A stretch of 64,000 nt of DNA. Source: Magallana gigas. Its lineage: Eukaryota. The position numbers and the translations under genes are program-made. Below are positions 959-22,687 of the stretch, piece by piece. Below the pieces are notes generated by a model. That model had not been told where the DNA came from. It saw only the letters and a list, made by a program, of their open reading frames with translations, and did not search any database. Every line of letters starts with the position of its first letter. Positions within the stretch are counted from its first letter, which is position 1. The stretch is taken from positions 34,348,001 to 34,412,000 of the forward strand of contig NC_088860.1 in NCBI RefSeq assembly GCF_963853765.1, written 5' to 3'.

Positions 959-1040
959 TACGAAAGCCGAGAAGGATCATTCGAGATTCGAAATACGAGA
1001 TTCGAATTACGAGATTCGAAATTCGAGATTCGAGATTCAA
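959..1040 (+). repeat. Left TIR with subterminal heptamer array (TTCGAGA/TTCGAAA/TACGAGA)
   Basis: About 8 tandem 7-mers directly after the 22-bp terminal motif, mirrored at 14815-14888. Confidence 0.9.
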
Positions 1041-1373
1041 TAACTGTAACCAACCAATGAAATGTTTTCAAACAGAAGGTATAAGCAATATCCAATCAAA
1101 TGCCGTATCTTATAATGTCGGCAAATTGATCGCCTTAAATAAAAGTCATGGAACCTCATAAAATAAGTATCACAGATGGACTCAAAGAATACAGCTTTAT
1201 CATAAGGCAGAACACATTTTGCCTAGATGAACTAGGTAAGTCAAAATGCACCATCGCATGTGTGAAGATGGTCCTACCCAAATTTACGTTTTCATTTCTA
1301 TTTGCCAGAATTACTTGGCACACTTGAAATTTCTGCACGTGTTACGACCTTGTCATGCTGTACTTTTTTCCCG

Positions 1374-2324
1374 TACGCGGGGGTGTTAAGGAAGCATATG
1401 GGCAATTTAGCGTCTTAATTTGACTGTTATATTCAAAATCGTGAAATTAAATAACTATTTTGAATACGATCAAAAACTAACTATTATCCTTTGAAATAGA
1501 TGTAAGTGCAAAAAAATCGGGTAGTATATTACTGCCACATTGGTGCATTATCACGTGACAACTATAAATAGCTTACGTATATTCCTTAACATAAAATGAG
1601 ATAGAACAACACTACCCCGCGGTTTACAAAATAAAATAAATAAACCAAGTGAAGGCAAAACATCTCAGTTTAATCAAAACTGCTGCTAGAATCCAATGTT
1701 TTTCTTAATTCAATAGTTATTCATCCAGTTCTCGTAAAACCTTCCCAACTTTTATAAAGTTTGCACGGAAAACGGCAAGTTGCATCAAAACAACACACAG
1801 CATGGGATTCTAGCAGCATTTTTCATTTTAAGCATTGATCAAACTAACGATACATATAAAATTCAAAGTTAAATATATGCGGGGTAGTGTTGTTCTAGTC
1901 GGATTTTTATATCGTAAACAACGACAGAGGAAAGCCTGGCCGAAAAATAAAAGCAAATTTACATACCTTTTAGCGAATGATTGATGAAACTAACATCTAT
2001 CCTAGTATTCTTATGTCCCATTCTCAATAAATCACACCACAATATTTTATTAGAGTTCTTAGATTAGTTATGTTTTGAATATGTTTACAATGCTTTCCGA
2101 TCAAATTCACACGACATTCAACTTTTAGTCATGACGTCATCAATGTATAAATCTACGTAATACAAACTAATTTCTGAAAAAAAATTGACTTCAGTATATT
2201 TATTTGCTTTTGGTCTACGTAACGTTGCTTAGATAATTGAATATGTACATAATAACTAAGATTTGTGATATCACGAAATTACATGCAACTCAGAATCCAT
2301 ATGCTTCCTTAACACCCCCGCGTA
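1374..2324. mobile_element. Non-autonomous TIR element (MITE-like), possibly Kolobok-type with TTAA TSD
   Basis: Perfect 28-bp inverted repeat TACGCGGGGGTGTTAAGGAAGCATATGG (1374-1401) and its reverse complement (2297-2324). Second internal 19-bp inverted pair at 1602-1620 and 1879-1897. No ORF. Confidence 0.7.
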
Positions 2325-3356
2325 GTAGATCTTTGATTCTTTTCATAGAACCCCAACCACAATATATCCTTAATTCTAAGTTATAAGTAAGTGTATGCCG
2401 TATATTGAAATTTAATAGCTGGTGTGTGTAAAAGGGGGGGGGGGGGGTAGGAAACGTTACCTAAACCGCCGTACAAATTAAATCTGCTGGTGAGCTGGTT
2501 AGAACAAGGTGCACATTATGAATACATAACTAGTCTTGTGGCTCTAAATCATTTCAATTTATACTCAGTACTGTCTCATGGTTGATCTTGAAAGGGGCAT
2601 TAGGTAGGGTCTAGCCGACCCCCCCCCCCCCCCCCTGGAAAATTCAAATATTTATAATTACCAAACAATACATGTATGCCTAGGAAACCCCCCTGGCAAA
2701 CTCGATTGGTTAATGAAGGCCAAGATCGAGAGAGACCTAGAACATTACACCCCTACGTTGGTTTCAGCTGCACAGGGTTTGTGGGGAGTCCCTCTTCCAA
2801 AATGTCAATACATTACACACCAAGTCTGGGAATTAACTTGTGAAAGAGGTTCATAGAGGTTTATGTTATTTACCTCAATCATGATTATTTACTCTGAATT
2901 TACTCTGAATTTTTATCAACCTTTGCTTAGAAATGTTTTCTTCATTCAATTTATATAGTTCTTTAAATATAACACGATATATAGCTATTTTATTTTATGA
3001 TTGTTGTACAAGAGTTGTGTGTATTACGAGTTTCCTTTTGAATTGCCTCTGCCCCAATTAAGTTCCGTCTGAAATGAAATTATGGTGGAAAAACATCAAA
3101 GGAGTCATTAGCATGGAGGATATTAAGCAATTAAAAAGGTTTCAACATTTTGTTTGGAATATAGAAAAAATGCTGATTAACCTATGTAAGTAATGATGCG
3201 CAAAGAAAAAAGAAATATTTAATTCAGTCATTCCAGGACAGGTCAGCTCTGGAATGTTGAGGGATGTCTGCATTGTTTAAACTTTAAACAGCCCCCCCCC
3301 CACCCCCGAAAAAATTCTGTATCTGCACATACTCTATTTTGGTCCCAAATTTGAGG

Positions 3357-3361
<5 letters not shown>

Positions 3362-3409
<48 letters not shown>
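3362..3409. repeat. (CT)n microsatellite
   Basis: Direct reading. Confidence 0.95.
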
Positions 3410-5195
3410 GTGCCTGTGATGTTAACTGTCAATTTGATCATAATTCTGAATTTCCTAAAAAAACTTATGGAGCGAGTATGCATTTTTTCCATTATACATC
3501 GGGATCAGGGTTCAAATTTAATTAATAATACATCCCAACTTAATTGAAATTGAATTGGTGGGTGTCATGTCATGTATTTACTGAATGAGGTAAGCTCTAT
3601 CAAGGTCTGTGAGGGATGAACTTTATTATTATGAATAGAATGCAATATAATTTGTTTACCAAATTAGGGCCTCATATATCCAGTCATCGGGCATGACATA
3701 TGAATCAATGTAGTCCGACATATCCGAAATAAATCGATCACCAAAGAAAGCATGTTATTGTTTAAATAATTATACATGTATATAAACATGATAAACCAAG
3801 TAGGACAGTTTTGTAGAATGATATAATGCAATGATCAACAGGTCTAGGCAACCTCCGTTGTTGGAGGATAGCTCAATTTCAAGATGGCTGCTAATTTTAA
3901 CCATATATGGAAAGTCACTTTGCATTGTGGGTGAAACTATCCTCCATTTTTGGAGGATAGCATGGGTATATTTCAAAGGTTTCGTGCATATCTTTAATGA
4001 AAAAATGCAAGCACCAGACCATATGGGAAATAAAGTTATGGAAACAAAGTAATGATTTTATGCGGCGATTTGAAATTCTATGTATAGTATTTTCACAATA
4101 TGCTTTGAAAGTGTGTATTTTCTGTGTTCAGTTTAACAAATGACATAGACTATTTACATCTGTTTCATTTAATCAAAATCACAAAATAGTGATGTTTATT
4201 CCTCATTAAAACATTAATGACTTAATTCACGTTTAGAGACACATAATAGATATCTTGATCTGCTATATTGTACATAGGAAATGTTTGCATATACCTTAGG
4301 AACTTTGTAGCTCTTATTCTAATTAATTCACAGGTTATTTAGTATCATTTAAATTTAATCCCCTTCACACAAGAAGACCTTGTTAAATTTTATTAATCAA
4401 AATGATACCATTTATAGATATCAATTATCCTGAATATTGAAAAAAAATGTGAGAGTCTTCACATAAAATATTTTCTTTAAAATCAGCCCTGCAATTATTT
4501 AAACTTAAATATTATCAATAAATATAATTATTAATAGCTAAATAAGGTGATATTTTTATTGTCTAATAATTATATTTTATTCATAGTTAACTCCCTTTGT
4601 AAAAACAGAATTAATTGCCCTTCATCTGAAAAGATCCACCAGGGGGCGCAGACATCTATCCTCCAATTTTGGAGGATAAAATATATCCTCCAAAATTGCT
4701 CAAGATTTATTTATCAAGATATATTTTCAAGTGTAAATAGAATGGAAGCAGCCTAAATTAATCTTTTACCAAAGATTGGAGAGTGCCCGATAGGGCAGTG
4801 CATTTAATACATATAATGATTCAAGATAGTCATGTAGATGTATAAAATCCTAAAAGATAACATCATCAAACGTCTTTGAGAAAGAAAAAAAAATAGATAC
4901 ACCTATATTTCATATCTGACATATGACAGTGACAGACAAGTGATCCTTTTTTTTTTTTTTTAGTTCTGATGTTAGCATTTTTTAGACAATTAGATTAAAG
5001 ATAATATATTTCATACTCAGCCTTATTAATTAAGTGAACAGTTCATATAAGTTCTTGCAGTTCTAGAGTCATGTTTACAATAATATTTCTTAATTACAAT
5101 GTAACGAAGTGATTAAATGATTTTTAATGTATGTAATATAATCTTTGTATATTCTATAATTTTCTTCAGCTCAAGCTTTCCCTGGAGCCACGTCA

Positions 5196-8098
5196 ATGGC
5201 ATATGCAGATAACATCGCAGAAAAACAAAAAATAATAATTCCATCCAAAAATGGATTATTTGTTTCACCAGAAGGGGGGTGGTTCAAACAAAGACGAACA
5301 TTTCATGTAGTCAAAGGTATGTTATTATTCATCATCTTTTACATTTAATTTTATCAAAATTTTAATGTTAATGAAAGATTATTACATGTAATATTAAGCT
5401 AATGTTAATACATGTATATTGCTTTGAATTTTTTTTCGTTGTAAATTTTATTCGTTATTTGTGTTTTTTTTACTTTAAAAGGAAAAGAAGCTGAAAATAC
5501 TAGTCTGAGAGATATAAGAATTGCTAATATCATGAAAAAAATTAGAGATCAGAAAAAAGCATGCGCACAACCACAGAAGGTAATGTTGTGTTATCTGCAT
5601 TGACCATTAGCAATACGTGTACTTAACATAATAATAAGGCCCAAAAAATTAATGAGTTGGTCATCAATTCATGCAAAATATTTCATAAATATTGTGCATC
5701 AGGTGGCTGCATGCTTAGTTTTGGGAGGGGGTCCAGACCCCCTCAAAAAAAAGAAAACTTATTAAGGTAATGCAACAGCAATTGTTTTAAGCAGCAGTGC
5801 CTGATCATGAACCAATGCATATACATTTTTTGGCCTTACTTTTAGGCAATAATATATACTAACTCAAAAAAACCCACATGTGATATGATATATCCACTGC
5901 ATATTCATTGATCTGAATCTCAATTATCTTCCTTTATTTATTTACAGAGAAAGATTGAATCTACATTCTCCTCATATGAAAAGTATACACGGAATCGGAA
6001 CCCAAGAATACGTGTGGGTTGGCGACACTTCAAGAATGGTACTGGTAGTTTTAAGCAGGTTTTTTACAAAGATGGAGGAGGTGTTAGAGAAGTTCCTTTG
6101 CCTTCCCTAGATATTGATATTAGAGCTGTTATTCACCATTTAAAGAAAGTCATGTTTCCCACAGGAGAATGTAAATACGGAGATGTTAATCAGACGGAGC
6201 TGAGTTTGGGTGATTATGCAGGAAAGATATTGAAGAATTTTGACATACAGGGAGATGACAACCAATGCTTTGGAAAATATTTGCAAGCACATGGGCTCCA
6301 TCTTTCAAGATGTACATTTTACTTAATGACTCAAGATATGATTACCTCCTCAGTTGATATTTCCAGTGACATTAGTGATTCTGAAATTTCAGACAAGAAA
6401 ACCTTGGGTAGAAAAAAGACAGACAGAAAACAGGATTCTAAAGTAGAAGAGCTTGATCTGGCATCCCTTTCTGTTCAGCGTCATCTTGTGCCCTTTGATT
6501 TATCTGGTGTTGTCTGTAAAAAAACTAGCTATCAGTATTCAATATGCACGTGAAAATACTTCGAACTATGATAGCGAGAGTTGCTTGATAAAATGTCATT
6601 CAATTTTAGAGTGCCAAAATATTTCGTCATTTACTGAGCAAGTGGATGAAGATGAAGACTACAATCCATGTTTGCATGGATTTTTCATAAGCAGGATCAG
6701 AAAGGTCAAAAGTGTTTTTTGGATTGCAAGTTTGAAAGATCTACTCATAATGGTATTTTAGAAAAGACTGTCCAATTCCCGTCATCCCTCAAAACTGAAA
6801 ACATGGAAGGAATCATTCTTCATGAACCAATTGAGATCTGGGGTTATGATGGGGATAAATGTGCGCTTGGAGTTGTTCCTAATGCAGATGAAAATGTCGA
6901 GTATCAATGGTTTAGAGATGACATTCCAGTAAATAATGGGGAATGTAGCTTGTACATTGTCAACGAACCTGGAACATATACGTGCCTGGTTTCATATGCA
7001 GATCTTCAGCAAAAGTCCAAACCAATCCAATTCATTTCTATTGAGATAAATGGATGTGAGACTTCAGTTGAACCAGCAGAATCTGTCAAACCAAATTCAT
7101 ATTCTAATTCAACTGATTAAGCTGTAGTAAAGGACTTTCCTGTTTCAAAGAAGGTTAGAATTGAAAACTCTGATTTGGTGAGAAAGCCAGGTGATTTAGA
7201 AAAGAAGAATTCTTCATGTGTCAAAGATAATTTGTGTTTTGCTGCTCCTGAAGTAAAAGTTGATGACCTACACATAGACTATTCAACTGCATTAGGATCG
7301 GGGGCATTTGGAACTGTGTACAAAGGCAAATGGGCAGGATCAGTTGTTGCAGTAAAGGCACTCACTGTTACCAAAAGGAATCGGAGTATAATGCTTGATA
7401 TGGTAGAAAAAGAGATAAACATCAGCTCTAGGATCCGTCACCCAAACATTGTTCTATTCCTGGCTGTAGCTAGAGCACCAACCACAATTTATCTTGGTCA
7501 TGAATACATTGATGGTTGTAATATGGAAGATGCTATTTTTGATCAAGAAACAAGGCAGCTGATGGATATAAAACCTGGGGACAAATTGTTCATTCTTCGT
7601 CAATGTGTACAAGGTGTGGCATATTTGCATGCTCTAGTTCCTCCCATAATTCACCAAGATATTAAACCCAGCAATATCATGATTAAAAAGGTTTGTCATA
7701 CTACCAAGCTTTGTGACTTGGTAGTTAGCCGCATCAAATCAGCAAGAGCTGCCAGTATGTGCACTACCCAAATTGGAAATGCCTGTGGAACACCGTCATA
7801 CATGGCCCCGGAGTGTTTGATTCACAACGAGAAAACTAGGATAAGCTCAGACATTTGGTCCCTTGGTATTATCTTGATTGAATTTGCAACTGAGGAAGAT
7901 GCTTGGTCAGTAGATGATGTGGTGGATACAGTGGATGCCATTAAGAAGAAGATGACAGAAAAAGAGCCCCCCATCCCAAATGTTAATGTCATAGGTGTAC
8001 CGGAAGAAGTCATGACCTCTAAAAAACTCTGTGTAAATTATGACAAATTGTTACGCCCAACAGCTGAAGATGTTTTAAAATGTGTGTCTTCAGTCTAA
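5196..8098 (+). pseudogene. Transposon-borne spliced gene: N-terminal domain + Ig-like domain + Ser/Thr (TKL/MAP3K-like) protein kinase; disrupted in this copy
   Basis: GT-AG exons 5196-5316, 5482-5579 and 5948-8098 join in frame (MAYADNIAEK...HVVK-G-KEAENT...QPQK-RKIEST...RVGWRHF). ORFs 6014, 6668 and 7175 share one frame. They are separated by a short out-of-frame stretch (about 6500-6670) and a single TAA at 7118-7120. Kinase motifs: GSGAFG, VAVK, HQDIKPSN, DLV (for DFG/DLG), GTPSYMAPE, SDIWSLG, RP. Confidence 0.85.
7175..8098 (+). CDS. Protein kinase domain ORF (307 aa), C-terminal part of the gene above
   Basis: All major kinase subdomains are recognisable in the supplied translation. 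Confidence 0.9.
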   Translation: MVRKPGDLEKKNSSCVKDNLCFAAPEVKVDDLHIDYSTALGSGAFGTVYKGKWAGSVVAVKALTVTKRNRSIMLDMVEKEINISSRIRHPNIVLFLAVARAPTTIYLGHEYIDGCNMEDAIFDQETRQLMDIKPGDKLFILRQCVQGVAYLHALVPPIIHQDIKPSNIMIKKVCHTTKLCDLVVSRIKSARAASMCTTQIGNACGTPSYMAPECLIHNEKTRISSDIWSLGIILIEFATEEDAWSVDDVVDTVDAIKKKMTEKEPPIPNVNVIGVPEEVMTSKKLCVNYDKLLRPTAEDVLKCVSSV

Positions 8099-8875
8099 AT
8101 GTGCCCCTTTCAAATTGGAAGTAAAGTATCTTGGAACTGAAAATGTTGGAAAATAGTTCGTTTGAATCATATATGAATTCCTTTGTTATAATTTGTATAT
8201 TAAGAACTTTGTCTATTGCTTTGGGTAAGAAATGTCAGCAATACAGAAATTTTCAAAAATCCAGTAGGGCATCTACTGTCTATGAATCTTCTTTTTTAGT
8301 TTCAAACACAGGGCGAAAAACCATCTTTAAGCAAGTCCTTAAAGGTGGCTTAAAGGTGACTTAAAGGAGCTTAAAGGCTATACAACCTTTAAGCCGCCTT
8401 TAAGTCACCTTTAAGCAAGTGCTTATAGGTCCTTAATGTCCAAACTTCTTTAAGCTACCTTTAAGCCACCTTTAAGCCACCTTTAAGCATCTTTAAGTGG
8501 CATTTACGCTCTCTTTACGCTGCCTTTACACTGTCTTCAAGTGGCCTTTAAGTCAATATTGATCAAGCTGAACAATAAAAACATATATTAAATGCAAAAG
8601 CTCTTTTATAGAGATGGGAGGGGGTCATCCGAGTGATAATATAATTTCCAAGGAAGAGGGGGGGGGGTGTTCCAGGCGGTTTTAATCGGCGCTCCATTAA
8701 ACACAGATCGCTATCATCAGCACCGCTCTGATGGACACAGATTGCCGTTATAAAATTCTTTATAATTTTTGGGGGGTTTCAAATTTATTGTAGGTATGAG
8801 CGCAGTCTCTGTATCTTAATATGTGCATAAAACTAATTAAAGTATGTTTGTTTCCTATTATAAAGTAATCGGTGA

Positions 8876-8882
<7 letters not shown>

Positions 8883-8917
<35 letters not shown>
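8883..8917. repeat. (CT)n microsatellite
   Basis: Direct reading. Confidence 0.95.
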
Positions 8918-8921
<4 letters not shown>

Positions 8922-9131
8922 CATCCGGTTATTAAACAAAATAAAGATAATGAACCAAAAATGCATGATTTAATTTGTTAATCGGTTTAAGGTTTGTATT
9001 TTATTTTTCAATTTTCATTATTTCTAACTCTAGATCTGCTAGATACATGTTAAAGATAAAAAGACTCTCAACTGCCTTTGTTATATCGGGCAGGATATTA
9101 CTGCTTTGTTTGTCTAGACATAGTTTTGTTC

Positions 9132-9354
9132 GTTTGTGTATATCTAATTAGAGTCTATTGTTTGTCCAACTTAAGAAAACCCCTGGAACTAACACAGAAT
9201 ATACAAGTTATACACAGCAGTTGTGTCGTGTGCCCAGGTGCATGTTTGTGTATATCTAATTAAAGTCTATTGTTTGTCCAACTTAAGAAAACCCCTGGAA
9301 CTAACACAGAATATACAAGATATACACAACAGGTGTGTCGTGTGCCCAGGTGCA
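9132..9354 (+). repeat. Tandem duplication, 2 x about 111 bp
   Basis: GTTTGTGTATATCTAATT...GTGCCCAGGTGCA at 9132-9242 and 9244-9354, with few mismatches. Confidence 0.9.
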
Positions 9355-10176
9355 CGTCAGGGTTTCTAAAGGCGTTGAATCTTAGTATGTACGAGTATAC
9401 GATAAGTCTAGTGAATAAAAGTTAATCTACATTTGTAATTCATTTTCAAAGTATTATATCCTAGCTCTGGGTTTCAAAGATGTTACGTCTACAAATTAAC
9501 GATACATGTATGTAAGAATAAAATCTTGAGGCTAATTAATTAATGTACCGGTGATCATAAATAGGGGTTGATTATTTAAATATATGTATAAGGGTAAATA
9601 TGTCAAATATACCCGGCCTGGCACATCATACAATTGTATGTACAAGTCATTTGCAATTGCCACATGCAGTAAATACGTCACCGGTAATTGGTAATTTTGT
9701 TTGTTATAGAATTGATAGTTTAAAAATCATGTACATGTACATACAATTACATGTAAATATTTAAACATATTGGAACGGCGCCGCGATCATGAAAACCGGG
9801 AAATTGCGGGAAATTGAACAAATACCCTAATAGTATCAATGCATTTAATAAAAGAAATGATTTCATTTTCTTTCTTACACTTTTATAGCTATAAATTAGA
9901 TGAACGTATATCTACTCGGTTTAAATTTATTAACTAAGAAAGCCTACTATAGTGAACCTAACAGTTTCCATTTAGGTATAATATATTTTTGTTCACTGAA
10001 GACCAAGTTCCGTATTTCATTCTAAATACATGCATGCATGTAATTTATAAATTAGATATAATTGATTGTTACAAACTGAATGGTTTGTCAAAATCTTTTC
10101 AAGTAAACACATTCAATACAGTGATTCAATATCCACTGATATATAGGATATAAAAACGCTCATATATATGTAAGTT

Positions 10177-10245
10177 GCCGTGGCGCAGAGGATGTGTGGT
10201 GATGCTAGTAAACTAAGGGTCCCGGGTTCAATTCTCGCCGTGGCC
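10177..10245 (+). repeat. tRNA-like Pol III module (SINE-head-like) inside the CACTA element
   Basis: A box TGGCGCAGAGG, B box GGTTCAATTC, GCCG/TGGC acceptor-like pairing, followed by a long T run. Anticodon arm is non-canonical. Confidence 0.55.
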
Positions 10246-10924
10246 GGTTTTTTTGTGTTTTTTTTTTTTTCATTTTTCTTTCTAGAACAAAAACCGTTTT
10301 AATACATTTTCTTTCATAAAGCTAATACATTTTGTTGGAAATTAAGCACAATATTGAATTAAATTTTCTTTAATGGCTTAAAGGTGGCTTAAAGGTGGCT
10401 TAAAGGTAGCTTAAAGGTGGCTTAAAGGTGGCTTAAAGAAGTTTGGACATTAAGGACCTATAAGTTGTCCTTAAAGGTGGCTTAAAGGTGGCTTAAAGAT
10501 GGTCTTTAAGCTGCCTTTAAGCCATCTTTACGCTTTCTTTAAGCCACCTTTAAGCAATACTTATAGCTTAAAGGTAGCTTAAAGGTTGCTTAAAGATCGT
10601 CTTTAAGCTACCTTTAAACACCTTTAAGCTATCTTTAAGGAGGACTTAAAGATGGTCATTCATCCTGTGAAAAGTACTTAATTTCATTACAGTGAACTCT
10701 TTAATTGTTTGTATTTTTGAGAGGAAAATACCTTTAATATGTTAAAATGTTGAGATTTTCTATCACTAGAGGTACATGTTGATTCATTACTACAGAAAAT
10801 GGTGCAATTTTTTTTTACAAAGCTGCGCATGCAAGTTTTACTGCATATCTCTTTTAGCATTGTATGAGTTATGTATGTGTTGTTTAGTTACTTTAATTTT
10901 TTTTTTATTTGTTTTATGGGTTTT

Positions 10925-11475
10925 TTGTAGGTCACCTGAGTCAATCAAAGGATGTACTGCTATTTGTTTTTCTTCTATTGACATACATTGACCTTTAACA
11001 TTTGAACATCCAGATAAATTGTTTAAATTAATTCATGAACCCAGGGTCAGGGGTTTTGTTATTAAGATGGGGCTCTTTTGTGATATAGTGGACATGGATT
11101 TTACTCTTTAATTAAAGATCATCCTTTCTACTACTGATACTGGGCATATAATAGGAAAACTAAGTGCATAGTTTAAGTGAGCCAAAAGCTGTTCTTGATT
11201 GGTGAAATTCATGACCCTAGGGGAAAATACTGTTTAAATTTTAAGATTTAAAGCGTTAATCTAAAAACCTTTAAACTGCCTATTGTTTATGTCATACATG
11301 TTTTTCAGGTCATACTTACTTCAATGGGTCACAATTGTCCATCTACTAGACATTGAATGTTACCAAATATTTTAAAAAAAACTTACAGCAATTATTTTAA
11401 AAACATGACATGCTAATTTTTTATCATGTTTTTTAAAATACTCAGGTGACTGTTAGAGCCCTTGGGCCTCTTGTT
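10925..11475 (-). mobile_element. Helentron-type non-autonomous element (HINE)
   Basis: Sub-terminal inverted repeat GTCACCTGAGT (10931-10941) and ACTCAGGTGAC (11440-11450). Ends GGGCCTCTTGTT. Flanked by T-rich sites. Confidence 0.6.
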
Positions 11476-11982
11476 TATATCCACATTCCAAGAGTTTGCA
11501 TGATGTTTGATTACAATAAATTGTTGATTTAAATAGAGAACATTTTAAATACATCTTTTGATTATTTCCTCCAACACTTTTTTATACATTTATATAGCCA
11601 ATACCGTAGTTGGAACATAGTGAGGTCACGATTAAGTATTTATTATTTACCATGGTAAATTTAACTACTACTGTTTGAGGTTTAACTGTGCAAATGTATC
11701 GAGTGTGCCCCTCAAATTAGCCTATCTTCAAGTAAATTTTACCAGCCCTGAGGGATGGAGTGAAACTTAGGATTTACTAGTCTTTTGTTTGCCGAAGGGT
11801 TTGATACGTATATGTACCCTTTTCAGTGAGATTATTTACTACGTAGATATGAAAATTTTAATTTGAGGAAAGAGTGAGGGTGTCAGAACATCACCCTTTC
11901 CCAAGATCCACAAATTGCCCATATGAAACAAAATTTGTTTCTAAAGCTATTTAAAAAAGCAATTTTTAATCGACATTCTAAA

Positions 11983-12498
11983 CAGTCAGGGGTGCGACTG
12001 ATATTCATTATATTGAAAAATAACTGATTATTGTCCTTTCTACTAACTTACAGGCTTACCAATTTGATAAAAAAAATTATGAAATACAGTCATTCATTTT
12101 TCCAAGGTCACTCTATATTTTAAACTCCAAATATTTATGACTGTTTTTACCCTTATTCTAAAAATGATGGATTTCAGTTATTATTAAGTTCAGACTAGAA
12201 ATCATCATTTTTAAATAAATTGGTAAGTCTGGGCGCACTTAATCATCTCAGTTGTGTTACGGGGTGCACTAATATATTTTGGTTTCAACTGTGGGTCAAG
12301 GTGTTTCCCTACACATGAGAGTCCATGGCAGGATAGAATACTATAAAGTAATTGGGTTGGAAGAATTAACTTGGGAATGGAAACATGATGAGAACAAGCT
12401 ATATGTACCACAGAAAAAAAGATGTGTACATTATGTAGTTAGTAGAAATGACAATAATCAGTTATTTTAATATGATGGATTTCAGTCGCACCCAACTG
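11983..12498. mobile_element. MITE with about 60-bp TIRs and 5-bp TSD
   Basis: CAGTCAGGGGTGCGACTGATATTCATTATATTGAAAAATAACTGATTATTGTC matches the reverse complement of 12435-12498. CTAAA lies on both flanks (11978-11982 and 12499-12503). Confidence 0.75.
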
Positions 12499-12625
12499 CT
12501 AAATGGTACATCATTTTCAGTAGAAGAAAAGTATCTCAAAATCATTTTTAATAGTATTGTCTGCAGGAGTATCAGAATTTAAGCATATTCACATGACAGA
12601 AATAAATTTGCCATTATGACAGGAA

Positions 12626-13825
12626 CTAGCCATCGTATTGATTGAACATTGTTATAAACTGGGCATACAGATTACATGCTTCATTTACATTTGATGGTCT
12701 TTGATGATTTGGCAGAATCAAGTTTGCCAGTTCTAAAAAATCTGTAGAACAACCATGTATTGGTCTCTCGGCACCAAAGTTTTTAAAACAGTTCCGTATA
12801 TCATCGGCACTGCAATTGACTTTAAAATCTCGAGCCCCATATGGTTCTGGGGTGAAGAATAAGACATCAGGTTTTCCTTTAGGACTGCAGCATTGTTTTT
12901 TGACCTGTATTCTGTGTTGGTTCCACTGTATTACGATTCGATGTAATTCCTCTTGCAGAAGGTCCATAAAGCAGTACCTTAAACAGTCGATCTGCAAAAG
13001 GTCACCATCATTGAAGAGGTTTGCATCTCGTAAATCTTTAAAAAATGTGATCCACCAGTCTGCAGCTTGTCGGCGTAAAATGCTCCACCAAGCCTCAATT
13101 CATTGATTAGAGGTGCTTCTCCCGTATATGAAACAGTTTTCATATTCCTGGTCATTAAGGGTGTGTAGCAATACTTGTATTTCTTCCAGCTCCTTGTTTT
13201 CTGTTCCGAGATCACATCTACATATATATGGACAGCCTCCTAACTGTTGTATGGTTTCTAAAAAATATCTTGAAACAATTTTAGGGCTGTTGTTGCTAGG
13301 TCCCACTTCAAGCCACATAATTCTCCTGGAAAATCCATCTATTGCTCCATGAATAGCAAACCCGAACGGTTTTAATTTATCATCTCCGTCGATATGCCAA
13401 ACAAAATTTGGTCCAGGTGCAGCGAACTGACGCTTAAGTAATCGTTTCTGTTTCCGTCTTTCTACTCCATCTGGGTCTATTACACGCATACGTTCCATGA
13501 CTTTATCCCGTTGAATTACTAAACCACAGTCGGTAATCAAACGTTTCCAAATTGTGCGGTACCCAAGACATTGCCCGCTGTTTTCTGTAACATCTAAAAT
13601 TGCATTTATGGTATTATAAATGTCAATGTTGTCAGTGCGTCGCTTCCAACCTTGGTTTCTGAACATTCTTTTCAAATGTGGTTCGCTTATTCTAATTCTA
13701 TGAACTGCTAACAACAGTTGTGAAATCTCCTTGTTGGTGTATCCTTGTCGAAATTATCTGTTAATTAGCTCATGTTTTGATAAAATTTCAGGATTTAGAG
13801 CAAGTGTGTATTTTGGCAAAACCAT
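12626..13825 (-). pseudogene. IS3EU DDE transposase (integrase core), 399 codons, two premature stops
   Basis: ATG at 13825 (MVLPKYTL...LINR*FRQGYTNKEI) runs in one frame through ORFs 13100-13714 and 12626-12997. Stops at 13754-13756 and 13100-13102. Catalytic motifs WHIDGDDKLK, RCDLGTEN and NQ*IEAWW. Confidence 0.92.
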
Positions 13826-14312
13826 ATTGGCCTGAAAATATCAATAGGCATGTTCATGATGTTGATCTGTTGTACATTTAAATAATCCTTCCATGCAACT
13901 ACATACATTTAGTTATTAAATCATGGACATTTTATACTATATATCACTACAATAGGTTTGTTTCTCACCTTAAAGGCATAACCCAACAAAAAATTATCAA
14001 GCTGTTGATTTCATGTTTACTTCATATGTTTACTTTCACTTTTTGATTCACAGTAGTCAACCGGAAGTCAATGTTGTTAAGTCGTACATAAAATAACTTT
14101 TAACAATTAACGATACTTTAATAAACATTTACCTAATTAACTTCAAGACAACATTAATAGTGTTGAATATGTCAGCCGCGGCAATGCTGTATCACTTTCG
14201 CAACGAGTTGCGCAAATGGATTAATGTAATGTAAGGGGGTTATGTAATAAAAGAGACAAACACTACAGCTTGAATTATAATAGTTATAGTTATTAGTATA
14301 ACCACACGGGGA

Positions 14313-14392
14313 CACAGGGGCTCGTCACGAAGTTTTTCAACCTTCTATATATACCACTTCTATACTATGAAAAACATAAACGAGCCCCTGTG
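14313..14392. mobile_element. 80-bp micro-MITE with 8-bp TSD
   Basis: Perfect 13-bp TIR CACAGGGGCTCGT / ACGAGCCCCTGTG. Direct repeat CACGGGGA at 14305-14312 and 14393-14400. Confidence 0.8.
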
Positions 14393-14814
14393 CACGGGGA
14401 GTGCGCCTGGCTAAAATGAGTTTTCTATACGCGAATTAGTTGTTCAATTTATTTACCAAAATGGATTATGGTTAGCTTCATTTCGACGAGTAGGCCCCCT
14501 AAATATATCGTTGATAAAGACAACAATGGCTACGTATTTTATTATTATATATGTATTGTAATAGAACACGGGGTAGATTTTACAAAACCATACATCAATG
14601 ACGTTGCCTGAACATGCATACACTGTAAATGAAAAGTTAAAAGTATAGAGAGCAATGTATTTGACTTACCGTGTCTGTACTCTAAAGTCTAACCTTGAAA
14701 CATATTAAATGCAATCGTTTACAATTAACAATTAAACGCGATGAATGTGTTATCTTGTTTCTCTTTGGATTTGATTTGTTTGTAACCTTTTTTCTGATTG
14801 GTTTATATAGATAT

Positions 14815-14888
14815 TGAATCTCGAATTTCGAATCTCGAATCTCGTATTTCGAATCTCGAATCTCGAATGATCCTTCTCGGCTTTCGTA
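14815..14888 (-). repeat. Right TIR with subterminal heptamer array
   Basis: Reverse complement of the left end: (TCTCGAA/TTTCGAA)n followed by TGATCCTTCTCGGCTTTCGTA. Confidence 0.9.
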
Positions 14889-15910
14889 GGTTGCTGATAG
14901 AAATGCAAACACATATTTTTATTGTAAGTTGAGCATGAATTTATTAGATACAAATATCGTAGTGTTTAATTTTTGTTTCTCGGGATGATGGTTTGATGCC
15001 TCCGGAGTTGATTATTTTCTTCGATAGCTACCATTTCGGTTTAAATTTAGCAGACATTTAGATGAAGGTGTAAGTAACAATCCCTCAAAGTTTCGTTTAG
15101 TTCTTAAGAAATTTACTGGAGCTGGAATATTTATTTAGAGGCATGGTCTAAAACGTGGTCTGGATCGACGGAGCAGTCAGAGTGTCAGACTTTGTATACA
15201 TTTTGACAAACGTTTTGTAACACTTCGATGGGTGTGATTTCTATTAGAAATGATGGATTTCAAAGTCAATCATCACATTTCAAGGTAATATAGGAATTCA
15301 ACCATATAAAAAGGGGGGGGGGGTTAAGTTCACCGAAGTGTACGTATAAATGAAACTGGTATACCGGTCTGTTGCACATTCCTATAACATAGTAGTTCTA
15401 AGATGTCAAAGGTCAAGGTCAAAAGGTCACGTTCAAAAGGGTCAAAGGTCAAAGTCGTTCAAGATAACTCTTTACGAGTAGTTTTAGATTGTCTGGCAGT
15501 GAATAGTCATGTTAGGCCCTTTAAACCCCTTTTAGGAGTCAAAAAGTGGCCCCTCGGACCACAATTTTTAAAATGACTCTTTTGTTCCTAACTAAAATTT
15601 GAAAAAGTTTTTAAAATCGGATGAATTATAGAAAAGTTACAGCTAAAGGGCTGTTTTGAACGTTGACCCCTGCAGAACCCCTATTTTTTCAAACTGTATA
15701 CCCAAAAACTTTTCCGGTCTGCGGATTGTGTGTGTCATTATATATATATAAACTATTGTAACAATTCCTTAAACACTTGAGAAAACGAATAACGCGTGAT
15801 TTTTGTTTAACATTAAACCTCCAATAGACGATTTTCATCGACTAATAAAACTGGAAGTAGTCAACATTTTTTAATGAAACTTAAAATATATGTTGATTAC
15901 GTCTATTTAA

Positions 15911-17869: not shown

Positions 17870-18985
17870 TGGGGTAAGATAGCAAGGTGGGAAGAGTAGA
17901 CACAGGAGGTGAGTGTAAGAACAATGAGAGTGGGATGAAAGTGGGTTGGGTGTGGGGTAGAAAGAGGTGTGTGGAAGTGGAGGGGAAAGAGTGTGGATTA
18001 GAGTGGGAAGTGAAAGATGGGTGTGGGGGAGATAGTGTGGGGTGTGAAAGGGATTGGTGTGAGAGAGGGGTTTAAGTGTAGGAGAGTAAGGTGAAAAAAG
18101 ATTTGAGAGAGGAAGATTGGTGTCGGAAGAGACATTATTTTGAGAATGGGATGAGAAAATTGGGAGATAGAGTGTGTGAGATGAGAGTGGGATAGAGAGG
18201 TGGAACAAATGGGGTGAGAGGTGTTTGTTTGTTTGTGGAGAGAGAGAGACAGAGAAAGAGAGGTGGGAAAACGGAGAGAGAGAGAGAGAGAGTGGGGTGA
18301 GTGAGAGGGGTGAGTGGGAGAAGTGAGAGGGATGGGTGTGGGTTGAAAGAGATGAGTGAGTGGTGAGAGAGAGCGGGGTTAGAATGTGGACAAGAGTTCA
18401 GAATGAGAAAAGGGTGAGTCGGTTGAGAGAGTAGGGAAAGAGGGTACATGTAATTGGTAAGAGTGAAGATGAGAAATTGGCGTGTGAGTGAGTGTAGAAG
18501 AAGGTAAAAGAGTGGATTGAGAGAGAGGAGAGAGGGGTGACTTTGAGAGAAAGTGGGTGTTAGAGAGAGGGGCAGGGAGAAGCAATAGGCAATGAGATTA
18601 AGGTGAAATAGTCGTTTGGTTTTGCTGAGAGAGAGGAATAACAAAGTGAGGTGTTAGTGGGAAAGTGGCGTTAGAGAGAGAAAGAGAGAGAGTGTGTGTG
18701 TGTGTGTGTGTTTAAGAGAGAGAGTGTGTTTAAGTGGAGGATAAGAAAGATATAGAAAGAGGGGTTTAGACTGCGTGGATTGTTGGGTGAGAGTGTTGGG
18801 TAAGGGGGGTGTAATGGGTGAGTATGTTGAAAATGTTGGGTCAGAGCGTGAATGTGGTAAGAGAGAGGTGAAAGAAAGAGGGAGAGGAGAGGAGGTTGGT
18901 GCAATGAAAATGAATGTGCAGAGAAAGAGGTGTAAGTGTTGGTGAGAGAGAGAGAGAGAGAGAGGGAAGTGAGTGTTAAGTGAGT
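17870..18985 (+). repeat. GA/GT-rich low-complexity polypurine tract
   Basis: About 1.1 kb nearly devoid of C on the plus strand, a mosaic of (GA)n and (GT)n. The ORFs called here are compositional artefacts. Confidence 0.9.
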
Positions 18986-19577
18986 GCTTAGTTCTACCGT
19001 CTGGTTTTGCAGTGGGGTTGGGGGTTCAAAATATCCATTGAATTAGTGTGGGGTTTTTTCTTTGAAAATATTTGTCTTTGTCAAAATTTGAGATTTTGAT
19101 GAGGAAGTCAAATTCCTGTCAATATCGGATTTTGAGTTAAAGTCTATTTTAACGAGGCCGGGTCTAATTTGTTCTGCCCTAGATTTTTGTATGAATTTTT
19201 TTACATGAATTTCTACTGACCACACCGTTTGTTTAAGGGGTCATCTCAAAGTTTGTTAATTTTTAACATAGGACCCTATGGGATTTTAATCAATTTTGCA
19301 CATTTGTTACAATTTTTTTAAACTTCTGCCCTAGGGATTTCTTTTTCTATTCTACACGTTAAAGTTATTGCTAAAAGACATCAAATGGTCAAATAAAAAA
19401 AAACCTTTTACCTCCTGGATTGTTCCAGGGGTCTTATCAAAGTTGTTTTTTTGTATGCCCAATTTCCCAGTTTGTCAGATAATGGCTATTTTTTTTTTGA
19501 CAAAGGCGGAAATGGTGATCTCTATAGTATTATTAAAACATTCAGACATATTTAAGTAATAAACTAGAACTGTCCTT

Positions 19578-22500
19578 ATGGGGCTAACAACCCTAACTTG
19601 TAAAACAAACATTGTTACAGAAACAGTAACGAGGAATATATCTATACCTGTGGACGAGAACCTCTCCAGGACCACCACTGGAACCAGTATGACTGTGGGT
19701 AGTCAAAGCCACCAGGAAGCAACTTGCATGATTAGAGAGGCACTCAACACGGCCAAAACCAAGGTCAGAATAGGATTTTGGAACGTGCGAAACATGTACG
19801 CAGCAGGAAAATTGGCACAAGTAACAGCAGAAATGAGGAAATACAACTTACATGTGCTGGGAGTCAGTGAGAGCAGATGGGTCAATTCGGGAAGAATGCG
19901 AACAACAACAGGTGAAACTCTATTGTATTCTGGCCGAGAAGATGGACAACACCATGAAGGGGTGGCAGTTATACTCAAGAAAGGAGTAGAAAAGTTCTTG
20001 ATGGAATGGAAACCAGTTAGCAGCAGATTGATGTTGGTGAGACTTAGAGGAAAGCAGGTCAACACTACGGTTTTCCAGTGTTATGCACCTACTAACAATG
20101 CAGATGAAGAAGACAAAGATGCGTTTTACGAACAACTGCAAAGAGAACTAGACAACACACCAGACCATGATATGAAGATCATCATGGGAGATATGAATGC
20201 TAAAGTAGGAGCAGATAATGAACTCTACAATAGAGCAATGGGGCACCATGGTTGCGGTATCATGAATGAAAATGGACATAGGCTTGCAGAGTTGTGTACC
20301 ACCAACAACTATGTGATCGGAGGAACTCTATTCCCCCACCGAGACATTCATAAGTTGACATGGCATTCACCAAACGCGAGAGATCAAAACCAAATTGACC
20401 ACATCATGATAAATGGTAAATGGAGATCATTGCTTGATGTGAGGGTTAAGAGAGGCGCTGATGTTGGTAGTGATCACCACCTGGTAACAGCATCTATCAA
20501 ACTAAAACTGCGCAACACACAAGGAAAGCTTACAACAAGGAAGAGATTTGATGTGGACAAACTCAGAGATATCAAGACAAGGCATGAGTTCAACATCACA
20601 CTCAAAAATAAGTTTGGCATTCTACAAAACCTACAATCAGAAAACAAGACAACATCGGTTGATGAAAAATGGAAAGAAATTTGTAACATATACACTGAAG
20701 CTAGCGAAAAGTGCATTGGCTACAAACAAAAACAAAAGAACAAAGAATGGATAACACCTAACACTTGGAAAATGATCGAAACAAGAAAATGCACCAAAAA
20801 GAAAATACTTGAAGCCAAATCACTGAGACTCAAGGAGAAACATCAACAAGATTACAGTGAAATACAGAAACAAGTGAAAAAAGCTGTACGTACAGATAGA
20901 AGAGCATACATAGATGCCTTTGCAACAAGAGCAGAAGAGACAGCCAACAAAGGGGAACAAGGAAATCTATACAAAATAACAAAAGTAATATGTGGGAAAA
21001 ACAGACCATCACCAAACCTTCCCATCAAAGACAAACAAGGAAAGCTGATAACATCAGAGAATGAAATGGATGAACGGTGGACAGAACATTTTAAGGAGAT
21101 CTTAAACAGACCACCTCCGATCCATGAACCTGAAATCAGTGAACCCGAATCAGAGTTGAATATAAACACCAATCCACCAGACGTTCCAGAAATTACATCG
21201 GCCATACAGTGTTAAAAAATGGAAAATCTCCTGGGAGTGACAATTTAAATGCTGAGCTATTCAAAACGGACCCACTCCTTACAGCTACCATCCTCCAACC
21301 AACCTTCAAAGAAATCTGGGAAAGTAAGACCATACCAGATCAATGGAATCATGGAGTCATCATTAAAATACCAAAAAAAGGAAATTTAAATGACTGTAAT
21401 AACTGGCGTGGAATAACACTTCTCTCCATTCCAAGTAAAATCATGGCTAAAATTATCATCAGAAGAATATCCAAAGCCGTAGATGTCAAACTACGGATGG
21501 AACAAGCAGGGTTCAGACCAGGACGAGGATGTATCGACCAAATATTCACACTGAGAAACATCATCGAACAGTGTACGGAATGGCAGCGACAACTTTATCT
21601 GAACTTCATCGATTTTGAAAAGGCCTTCGACAGCATTCATAGAAACAGTCTCTGGAGAATTGTGCGTTCGTACGGCATCCCCCAACATCTTATAGACATC
21701 ATCAAGAGTTTCTACGTCAACTTCAGATGCAAAGTTGGAAACTCAAGCATCGAGTTTGATGTCAAAACTGGAGTTCGCCAAGGTTGTGTAATGTCATCAA
21801 CGCTCTTCATCATAGCCATCGACTGGGTCATGAGGAACACAACATCAGACATCCCAAGAGGCATCCGATGGGGAACGTTCACAACACTTGAAGACTTGGA
21901 CTTTGCCGATGATATTGTCCTGTTTTCTCACTTCCATCAGCACATTCAAGACAAAACACATAGGCTCCACGAGTATGCTAGAAACATTGGACTGAAGATC
22001 AATGCCAAGAAAACTGAAGTCATGACCCTAAATGTGAATAACCCACAAGGAATTAAAATGGACAATCACATCCTTCCATTTACCAATAACTTTACTTATT
22101 TAGGGAGTATTGTCACAACAGATGGTGGAGCAGACAGGGACATTCAGCAGCGACTAGCCAAAGCGAGAGCAGCATTTAAGAACTTGCAAGCTGTGTGGAA
22201 ATCCAGCCAGTATACCAACAGGACAAAGCTCAAACTGTACAAAAGCTGCATCATACCAATTCTTTTGTACGGTTCAGAGTGCTGGAGAATGACAGAGAAC
22301 GACCTTAACAAACTGTCAACTTTCCACACCAAGTCCCTGAGAAGAATCCTTAAAGTATTTTGGCCAAATACTATCTCAAATCAGGACCTTCTCAGCAGAT
22401 GCGATCAGGAGGATATGGCCACCATCATCACCAGGAGACGATGGACCTGGGTTGGCCACATACTCAGAAGGGACCCTGAATCCATCATAAAGACAGCCCT

Positions 22501-22687
22501 CTTCTGGACACCAGAAGGAAAAAGGAAGAGAGGGAGACCAAAAGTTACCTGGAGGCGAACAGTGGAAGCCGAGATGAAAGAGCATCAGAGAAGCTGGGGC
22601 ACTCTCCAGAAGCTAGCCAGGGACAGACAGGGATGGAGAGCCCTCGTTACTGCCCTATACGCCAAAGGCGTCACGGGCAGTAAGTAA
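19578..22687 (+). pseudogene. RTE endonuclease-reverse transcriptase with one frameshift at about 21210
   Basis: APE motifs GDMNAK, NQIDHI, SDHHLV. RT motifs QAGFR, GVRQGC, LDFADDI. ORFs 19578-21215 and 21209-22687 join if one T is restored (AIQC-LKNGKSPG). The ATG at 19578 lies in the TSD, so the native start is probably MTVGSQ at about 19689. Confidence 0.9.

Follow-up and report, generated by a model that had tools for sequence, protein, structure and literature searches.

Cut-and-paste transposons are usually thought to require a transposase only. The eukaryotic elements described as IS3EU or GingerRoot are recognised by TA..TA ends, 6-bp target-site duplications and an IS3-like DDE transposase that lacks the HHCC motif (PMC10045372), and the TAY..RTA form of IS3EU termini is likewise documented (PMC10045372, PMC12730594). 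Repbase has listed IS3EU families of an acorn worm and other animals since 2012 (PMC11934779), Crassostrea gigas repeats have been classed as IS3EU (PMC8268682) and a 2012 talk mentioned transposons carrying host-derived proteins (PMC3520738). A 2025 paper, which cites Repbase entries from an acorn worm and a clam, describes the structure and function of IS3EU elements as largely unexplored (PMC11934779). For the fungal TET+ IS3EU families of Pucciniales and Tuber, one sentence of another 2025 paper reports genes for a transposase, a TET/JBP dioxygenase and an alpha-kinase (PMC12730594). Here we analyse a 64,000-nucleotide stretch of Magallana gigas DNA (contig NC_088860.1, positions 34,348,001 to 34,412,000), referred to below as the window, which holds a 13.9-kb element (959-14888) with a minus-strand transposase gene and a convergent plus-strand protein-kinase gene. 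The element shares with published IS3EU/GingerRoot elements, among whose listed hosts is C. gigas, the TA..TA termini, inverted ends of more than 30 bp, 6-bp duplications and an IS3-matching DDE transposase. Whereas the published descriptions deal with the transposase, the element described here adds a eukaryotic-type protein kinase as a second gene.

We consider it probable, at roughly 0.85, that the window contains an inactivated copy of an autonomous IS3EU/GingerRoot-type cut-and-paste transposon, belonging to a lineage with two conserved genes, a transposase and a convergent kinase gene of four exons. Within this transposon lineage the kinase gene is conserved and under selection, and it is transcribed and spliced; it is not captured junk.

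Ends and transposase of the element

Inverted ends and a perfect 6-bp duplication enclose both genes, as an earlier note on this DNA, made from the sequence alone, had proposed and as direct reading of both ends confirms. The duplication GGTTGC stands at 953-958 and again at 14889-14894, abutting the element on either side; a six-base match is expected by chance once in 4096. The left terminal inverted repeat (959-1036, plus strand) starts with TACGAAAGCC and carries subterminal ATTCGAGATTCGA-type repeats, and the right one (14811-14888, minus strand) ends with GGCTTTCGTA. The outermost 33 nt, beginning TACGAAAGCC, are the same at the left and right ends, and a repeat search of the window returned the two ends as an inverted pair (I1; 958-1036 and 14811-14889) of 79 nt with 89% complementarity. 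The empty site predicted for this locus reads CATAGGTTGCTGATAG.

The transposase gene (12626-13825, minus strand, about 400 codons) matches the Pfam rva_4 'integrase core domain' at 1.1e-18, which upholds its description as an IS3-like DDE transposase, and its product displays the motifs WHIDG, CDLGTEN and NQ-x-IE (NQRIE in relatives). It is 91% identical to an intact protein of 412 residues, P0203, which matches rva_4 at 1.1e-32 and is represented by 237 member sequences, close to the 232 of the intact kinase P0152 discussed below. The best bacterial family model is NCBIfam IS3, with an E value of 9.3e-11 that lies below the curated cut-off, followed by IS481 at 3e-3. Relatives of the transposase also match rve and HTH_21, the latter in the N-terminal region, and inspection by eye of the N-terminal 145 residues of P0203 revealed no H-H-C-C pattern. 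Six-base duplications were read at five elements, namely GGTTGC in the window, TGATTG at a deletion derivative on C5 (L003), AAAATC in Saccostrea echinata, GATATG in Mytilus coruscus and TTTTTC in the nemertean Lineus longissimus. The TA..TA ends, the 6-bp duplications and the IS3 model as best bacterial match sustain the IS3EU-type assignment; in its ends, its duplication, the type of its transposase and the absence of an HHCC motif, the element is of the IS3EU/GingerRoot type.

Two stop codons interrupt the transposase in the window: a TAA at 13754-13756, where relatives have a tyrosine, and a TGA at 13100-13102 inside the NQ[R]IE catalytic motif, in place of the arginine of relatives. The window copy is dead, because its transposase has these two stops and four later repeats are nested inside the element. 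The earlier note had taken the element to be intact, which was a misreading in view of the stops in the transposase, the lesions in the kinase gene and the four nested repeats. The window copy is old and inactivated; both of its genes are broken and it is incapable of the activity proposed for the lineage.

The kinase gene and its protein

The kinase gene lies on the plus strand opposite the transposase, as claimed earlier, and its catalytic domain matches Pfam Pkinase at 9.5e-45; the three exons assigned to it, by contrast, have to be replaced by the four defined by RNA contigs. Public DNA and RNA runs were compared over positions 5100-8300 of the window. Exon 1 (992-1235) contains the ATG at 1148 and is followed by a GT donor at 1236; its 5' limit at about 992 is inferred from a 244-nt overhang of an RNA contig rather than read base by base. 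The loose end of the RNA contig upstream of 5168 matches 1204-1233, just before that GT. Exon 2 (5170-5316) is in frame and is joined by a GT..AG joint present in two RNA runs and absent from the DNA run, and exon 3 (5482-5579) is bounded by joints from 5316 to 5482 and from 5579 to 5948, both found in RNA runs X15 and X17. Exon 4 (5948-8098), broken in the window, encodes the ubiquitin-like, middle beta, Ig-like (immunoglobulin-like) and tyrosine kinase-like (TKL) kinase domains. The frame is open from the ATG at 1148, 190 bp inside the left end, across 1148-1235, 5170-5316, 5482-5579 and 5948-8098. A second RNA contig contains an alternative upstream exon ending at 3587. The kinase gene is built into the left arm of the element, since exon 1 sits just inside the left end, and for the same reason it may be transcribed from that end; in S. 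echinata and M. coruscus, too, the gene models begin 170-270 bp in from the left end.

We rejected the three-exon model because what it counts as three exons is one exon (5948-8098) that two frameshifts and a stop codon have split. The open reading frames (ORFs) at 6014-6553, 6668-7120 and 7175-8098 lie in one shared reading frame, and comparison with the intact homologues P0001, P0002 and P0152 locates three lesions: an additional A within an A-run at about 6519, the loss of one base after 6702 and an in-frame TAA at 7118-7120. In addition, the DLG motif of the window kinase reads DLV. The matching region is one long exon in Saccostrea cucullata and a single ORF of 642 codons on a metagenome contig. 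One oyster DNA run and two RNA runs contain a version that differs from the window by about 1.6% and has none of the three lesions. This version corresponds to the 694-residue ORF P0152, whose 232 member sequences form a cluster that includes a Crassostrea gigas RefSeq protein. Intact, spliced and transcribed versions of the kinase gene are thus present in other oysters. A Magallana gigas protein named 'CUB domain-containing protein' (P0159, A0A8W8LZ58) ends with exons 2-4 of the kinase gene, at 94% identity to 5945-6265, and is probably a chimeric annotation across a transposon.

The N-terminal domain (6014-6352, plus strand) is predicted to be ubiquitin-like, with a beta-grasp fold. An AlphaFold model of residues 1-407 of P0152 (predicted local distance difference test score, pLDDT, 78) contains confident domains at residues 1-113, 152-260 and 265-347, the first with a pLDDT of about 90. 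This N-domain is without a Pfam match, and its best structural matches are the ubiquitin-like domains of plexin B1, plexin D1 and kindlin-1, with Z scores of only 6.8-6.9. The Ig-like domain (approximately 6806-7054, plus strand) gives a weak Pfam Ig_2 match in the window and one of 3.6e-8 in the homologue P0002; in structure it is nearest to the intracellular Ig domain of MALT1 (Z 7.8, 36% identity). A Foldseek search of the 407-residue N-terminal model against the PDB returned Ig-domain matches only, none of them at E <= 0.001.

The catalytic domain (7283-8080, plus strand, within the ORF 7175-8098) is TKL-like. A Pfam scan of the kinase ORF returned Pkinase, PK_Tyr_Ser-Thr and Pkinase_fungal only, with no alpha-kinase match, and the closest solved kinase sequences are CTR1 and B-Raf (E 7e-36 to 1e-24). 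The Gly-rich loop, the VAxK lysine, the alpha-C glutamate, HxD-x-K-x-x-N, DxG and APE are all kept in 23 family representatives; relative to the canonical motifs, most members have H-Q-D for H-R-D, and D-L/M-G stands for D-F-G. With Raf and CTR1-type TKL kinases the element kinase shares the Ser/Thr-type catalytic loop D-I-K-P-x-N, and Raf also has a beta-grasp domain, its Ras-binding domain, N-terminal to the kinase, as the element protein does. Outside the kinase domain, however, the element kinase has no detectable sequence relation to Raf or CTR1-type kinases, and it is encoded by a mobile element. Comparison with the fungal TET+ elements (PMC12730594) yields a similar mixture. They belong to the same superfamily, place a kinase-type gene opposite the transposase and end in TAYGG..CCRTA. 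Theirs, however, is an atypical alpha-kinase accompanied by TET/JBP, whereas the oyster element encodes a canonical TKL-like Pkinase behind ubiquitin-like and Ig-like domains, lacks TET/JBP and occurs in animal hosts.

Sister families in the same oyster genome have second proteins with this N-domain too. A family profile detects it (E about 1e-21) in three other oyster IS3EU families (C4:29.98 Mb, C7:16.46 Mb and C2:35.71 Mb), in ORFs that converge on the respective transposase genes; these transposases are 41-45% identical to that of the window. Two of these ORFs, of 580 and 597 residues and 45% identical to each other, have a C-terminal HECT-like domain (Pfam HECT 3.3e-7). The HECT-type elements share with the window element a convergent second gene, a ubiquitin-like N-domain and related TACGAAAG-type ends, readable at C4 and C7. 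Their second protein carries a HECT-like enzyme at its C-terminus, whereas the window protein has an Ig-like and a kinase domain and no HECT-like domain behind its N-domain, as judged from Pfam and the model; the transposases of the two types fall in separate clades. Beside two HECT-type IS3EU elements we also noted TRIM-like ORFs, one with RING and B-box domains (L042:5117-6109) and one with B-box and NHL domains (L045:7653-9383), which are probably host genes.

The gene pair in other species and other copies

The nearest relatives of the kinase are about 640-790 residues long and share its architecture, and in two bivalve species they are found beside the transposase between near-identical ends. 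In S. echinata the element (L020, 9829-24321, duplication AAAATC) has ends beginning TACGAAAGCCCAGAAGG, carries the kinase on the plus and the transposase on the minus strand, and lies inside a tetraspanin gene. The M. coruscus element (L023, 9731-30189, duplication GATATG) has its two genes in the same orientation. Two further M. coruscus loci carry a convergent pair of kinase and rva_4 genes, and at least four copies occupy different places in that species. In L. longissimus (L026, 6904-14362, duplication TTTTTC) the N-domain, the Ig-like domain and the kinase are accompanied by the C-terminal part of a transposase only. On another contig, of 450 kb, a kinase ORF of 674 residues is followed by a convergent, intact rva_4 ORF of 409 residues. 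Proteins combining the same N-domain and kinase also occur in Saccoglossus. The kinase is consequently a regular gene of the family and not confined to the window locus: both genes lie between the same ends at independent loci with different duplications in S. echinata and M. coruscus, pairs are present in oysters and mussels, and Lineus retains the kinase with a truncated transposase. The sequences indicate that the kinase has travelled with the transposase lineage across bivalves and at least one nemertean. A protein of Potamilus streckersoni (P0027, at L027) with a Macro domain and a kinase, 38-40% identical, was not counted as a member because neither a transposase nor an N-domain lies close to it; it might be a further fusion variant or else a host relative.

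Lineus (L026:6904-6930) and Saccostrea (L020:9829-9855) have the same outer 27 bases in their inverted ends, and those of Mytilus differ at only a few bases. The ends of the three are thus near-identical, although their proteins are only 50-65% identical. Such identity across phyla points either to horizontal transfer or to very strong constraint on the site that the transposase binds.

The two genes have diverged in step. Relative to the window, the Saccostrea kinase is 75-77% and its transposase 75-82% identical; for Mytilus the values are 52-57% and 58-66%. Between Crassostrea and Saccostrea the ratio of nonsynonymous to synonymous substitution rates (dN/dS) is 0.11-0.13 for the kinase domain (dS 0.87-1.17), 0.14 for the N-domain (dS 1.89) and 0.11-0.14 for the transposase (dS 0.92-1.0). 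The dN/dS comparison suggested for the kinase therefore gives a value of about 0.1 between genera, matching the transposase, and both genes are under purifying selection. Copies within M. coruscus diverge almost neutrally, at 0.35-1.3. Transposon genes usually show this pattern, being selected along the active lineage and decaying once inserted. Maximum-likelihood analysis groups the kinase-linked transposases of oysters, mussels and Lineus in one clade (support 99/97) and the HECT-linked oyster transposases in another (100/100).

For the 564-Mb oyster genome, which comprises ten large contigs, parts of the element were searched separately, as a whole-element DNA search was swamped by a nested 2.37-kb repeat. 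The kinase occurs at only two places, the window and a truncated fragment at C2:41.165-41.175 Mb. This fragment retains the element's left arm and the first part of the kinase exon (83-96% identity in DNA, 92% in protein) and is interrupted by two stops. It is clipped on either side, lacking the outer 35-40 bp of the left end and breaking off within the kinase exon, so that it offers no readable duplication. Apart from these two places, the best kinase match in the genome reaches 30% identity to that of the element, which leaves no recent host parent. The transposase of the window's family is likewise found only in the window and in a truncated copy at C2:30.70 Mb. The L003 locus on C5 is a 1.49-kb internal-deletion derivative with both ends and the duplication TGATTG.

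The terminal 94 bp have 1040 candidate matches in the genome, and the 40 that were scored are 91-98% identical. Twelve relatives inspected with 2 kb on either side (L028-L039) have at least 100 identical terminal bases, an interior of their own of at least 1.7 kb and differing flanks. Since a single end followed by 1.7 kb or more of family-specific sequence was seen at each of the 12 loci, they represent long non-autonomous elements and not short miniature inverted-repeat transposable elements. An abundant non-autonomous family thus shares the termini of the element, yet the assembly has no intact transposase of the window's family. A complete 11.2-kb IS3EU-type element of a different family is present at C1 (L040/L041; G000:C1:49675539-49686782), with ends that begin TACGGAAGCCCGTAAG, the duplication CGTAGC and an intact transposase ORF of 412 residues.

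Four later insertions interrupt the window copy. A 951-bp non-autonomous element (1374-2324, repeat pair I19) lies in intron 1 of the kinase gene; it has perfect 28-bp inverted ends starting TACGCGGGGGTGTTAAGG and 836 candidate copies in the genome, of which 40 were scored at 93-98% identity, and it is missing from the sister copies L003 and C2:41.17 Mb. Between the two genes lies the 2.37-kb repeat (8304-10673, repeat pair I2), which has been recently active, as dozens of copies with 94-98% identity are found on all chromosomes; its ends carry inverted arrays of an 11-bp CTTTAAGCCAC-type unit. A non-autonomous element of about 520 bp (11979-12503, repeat pairs I14 and I21) has many copies at 74-85% identity, and a small insert of about 80 bp (about 14313-14392) appears as an alignment gap against the sister copy at C2:30.70 Mb and has copies elsewhere. 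Just downstream of the element, adjacent plus-strand ORFs of 545 and 492 residues (19578-22687) encode an AP (apurinic/apyrimidinic) endonuclease and a reverse transcriptase, and mark a non-long-terminal-repeat retrotransposon. The window also has a strong G-over-C skew of 0.875 at 18001-19000, and a simple repeat at about 18238-18310 matches simple repeats at several of the fetched loci.

Competing explanations and the role of the kinase

Several observations weigh against an autonomous two-gene transposon lineage. The genome holds no intact copy, and the kinase is limited there to the window copy and the C2 fragment. At L022 in M. coruscus a left end and a kinase, and at L016 in S. cucullata a kinase and a clipped left end, have no transposase within 10 kb, and we treated both as partial copies that speak neither way. 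The kinase-linked transposase P0218 falls outside the main kinase-linked clade, so that a single acquisition of the kinase is not proven. The modelled support for the ubiquitin-like domain is middling, with Z below 8, and both the substrate of the kinase and its help to transposition are putative.

The confinement of the kinase to those two places, together with the abundance of relatives that share the ends and lack the kinase, is what would be expected if a host kinase gene had been taken up by, or inserted into, a single copy of a family that has none. We give this explanation almost no credence, as the pair is enclosed by near-identical ends, each time with a different duplication, in both S. 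echinata and M. coruscus, a kinase lies between such ends in Lineus, exon 1 is within the left end, no host parent exceeds 30% identity, and kinase and transposase co-diverge with dN/dS values of about 0.1 for both. Purifying selection on both genes between genera, and transcription and splicing of the kinase in oysters, would also fit a domesticated locus, in which a kinase and an integrase-like gene form a conserved, immobile host pair that resembles a transposon. That explanation is highly improbable as well, if slightly less so: flanks and 6-bp duplications differ at every locus, the four or more M. coruscus copies lie at different places and diverge almost neutrally, the S. echinata copy sits inside a tetraspanin gene, the window copy is broken but has an intact counterpart in other individuals, and the termini have over 1000 candidate matches, a sign of mobilised non-autonomous relatives. 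We therefore retain the reading of the element as a dead copy of a transposon lineage that encodes its own kinase.

How the kinase might serve this lineage is approached through its partners. An intact signalling kinase has been retained alongside the transposase in oysters, in mussels and in a nemertean, implying that protein modification is of advantage to the element. We propose that the ubiquitin-like domain may be a shared adaptor of IS3EU second proteins, and that the attached enzyme, a kinase here, a HECT-like ligase in sister families and reportedly an alpha-kinase in fungi, would modify proteins in a way that favours transposition. Viral kinases and E3 ligases offer an analogy, on which host factors involved in restricting or processing transposition seem likelier targets than the transposase, at what we would judge somewhat short of even odds, with some probability left for other targets. 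Other transposases are regulated by phosphorylation, and the strict co-inheritance and co-divergence of kinase and transposase would suit a kinase that acts on the element's own transposase, on its activity, stability or nuclear import. We regard this as unlikely, since sister families exchange the kinase for a HECT-like ligase on the same N-domain, a swap that a host target explains as easily, and contact between the two proteins is conjectural; the predicted complex of the M. coruscus transposase with its partner's ubiquitin-like domain scored 0.00, which counts neither way.

As to novelty, the full-text literature on IS3EU with kinase or bivalves, a search outside which Repbase entries fall, yielded no report of an animal IS3EU element with a eukaryotic-type protein kinase, and the GingerRoot paper makes no mention of a kinase. 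There is nevertheless a real chance, though less than an even one, that the kinase-bearing family is already in Repbase, for example among its oyster or acorn-worm IS3EU entries, with the kinase annotated. The long-standing acorn-worm and other animal entries, the oyster repeats already classed as IS3EU and the 2012 mention of host-derived cargo all speak for this, and, given the Saccoglossus proteins of this architecture, a Repbase consensus may already contain the kinase gene; the silence of the searchable literature speaks against it. Kinase cargo in animal transposons, which we could not find described, thus appears to be undescribed subject to the content of Repbase.

For gene annotation, our results mean that bivalve gene sets list proteins of this transposon lineage as 'uncharacterized' or 'kinase domain-containing' host genes, and that at least one Magallana gigas gene model fuses exons of the element to a CUB-domain gene. 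With its natural domain-swap variants, the two-gene system offers a concrete way into the question of host manipulation or self-regulation by a DNA transposon. We suggest, tentatively and as one of the less probable of our proposals, that IS3EU elements may encode a modular effector, in which a ubiquitin-like adaptor would be combined with interchangeable enzymes (a TKL kinase, a HECT-like ligase, perhaps an alpha-kinase) that rewire host signalling, silencing or DNA-damage responses. If true, such an effector would correspond, among cut-and-paste transposons, to the kinases and E3 ligases with which large DNA viruses counter host restriction.

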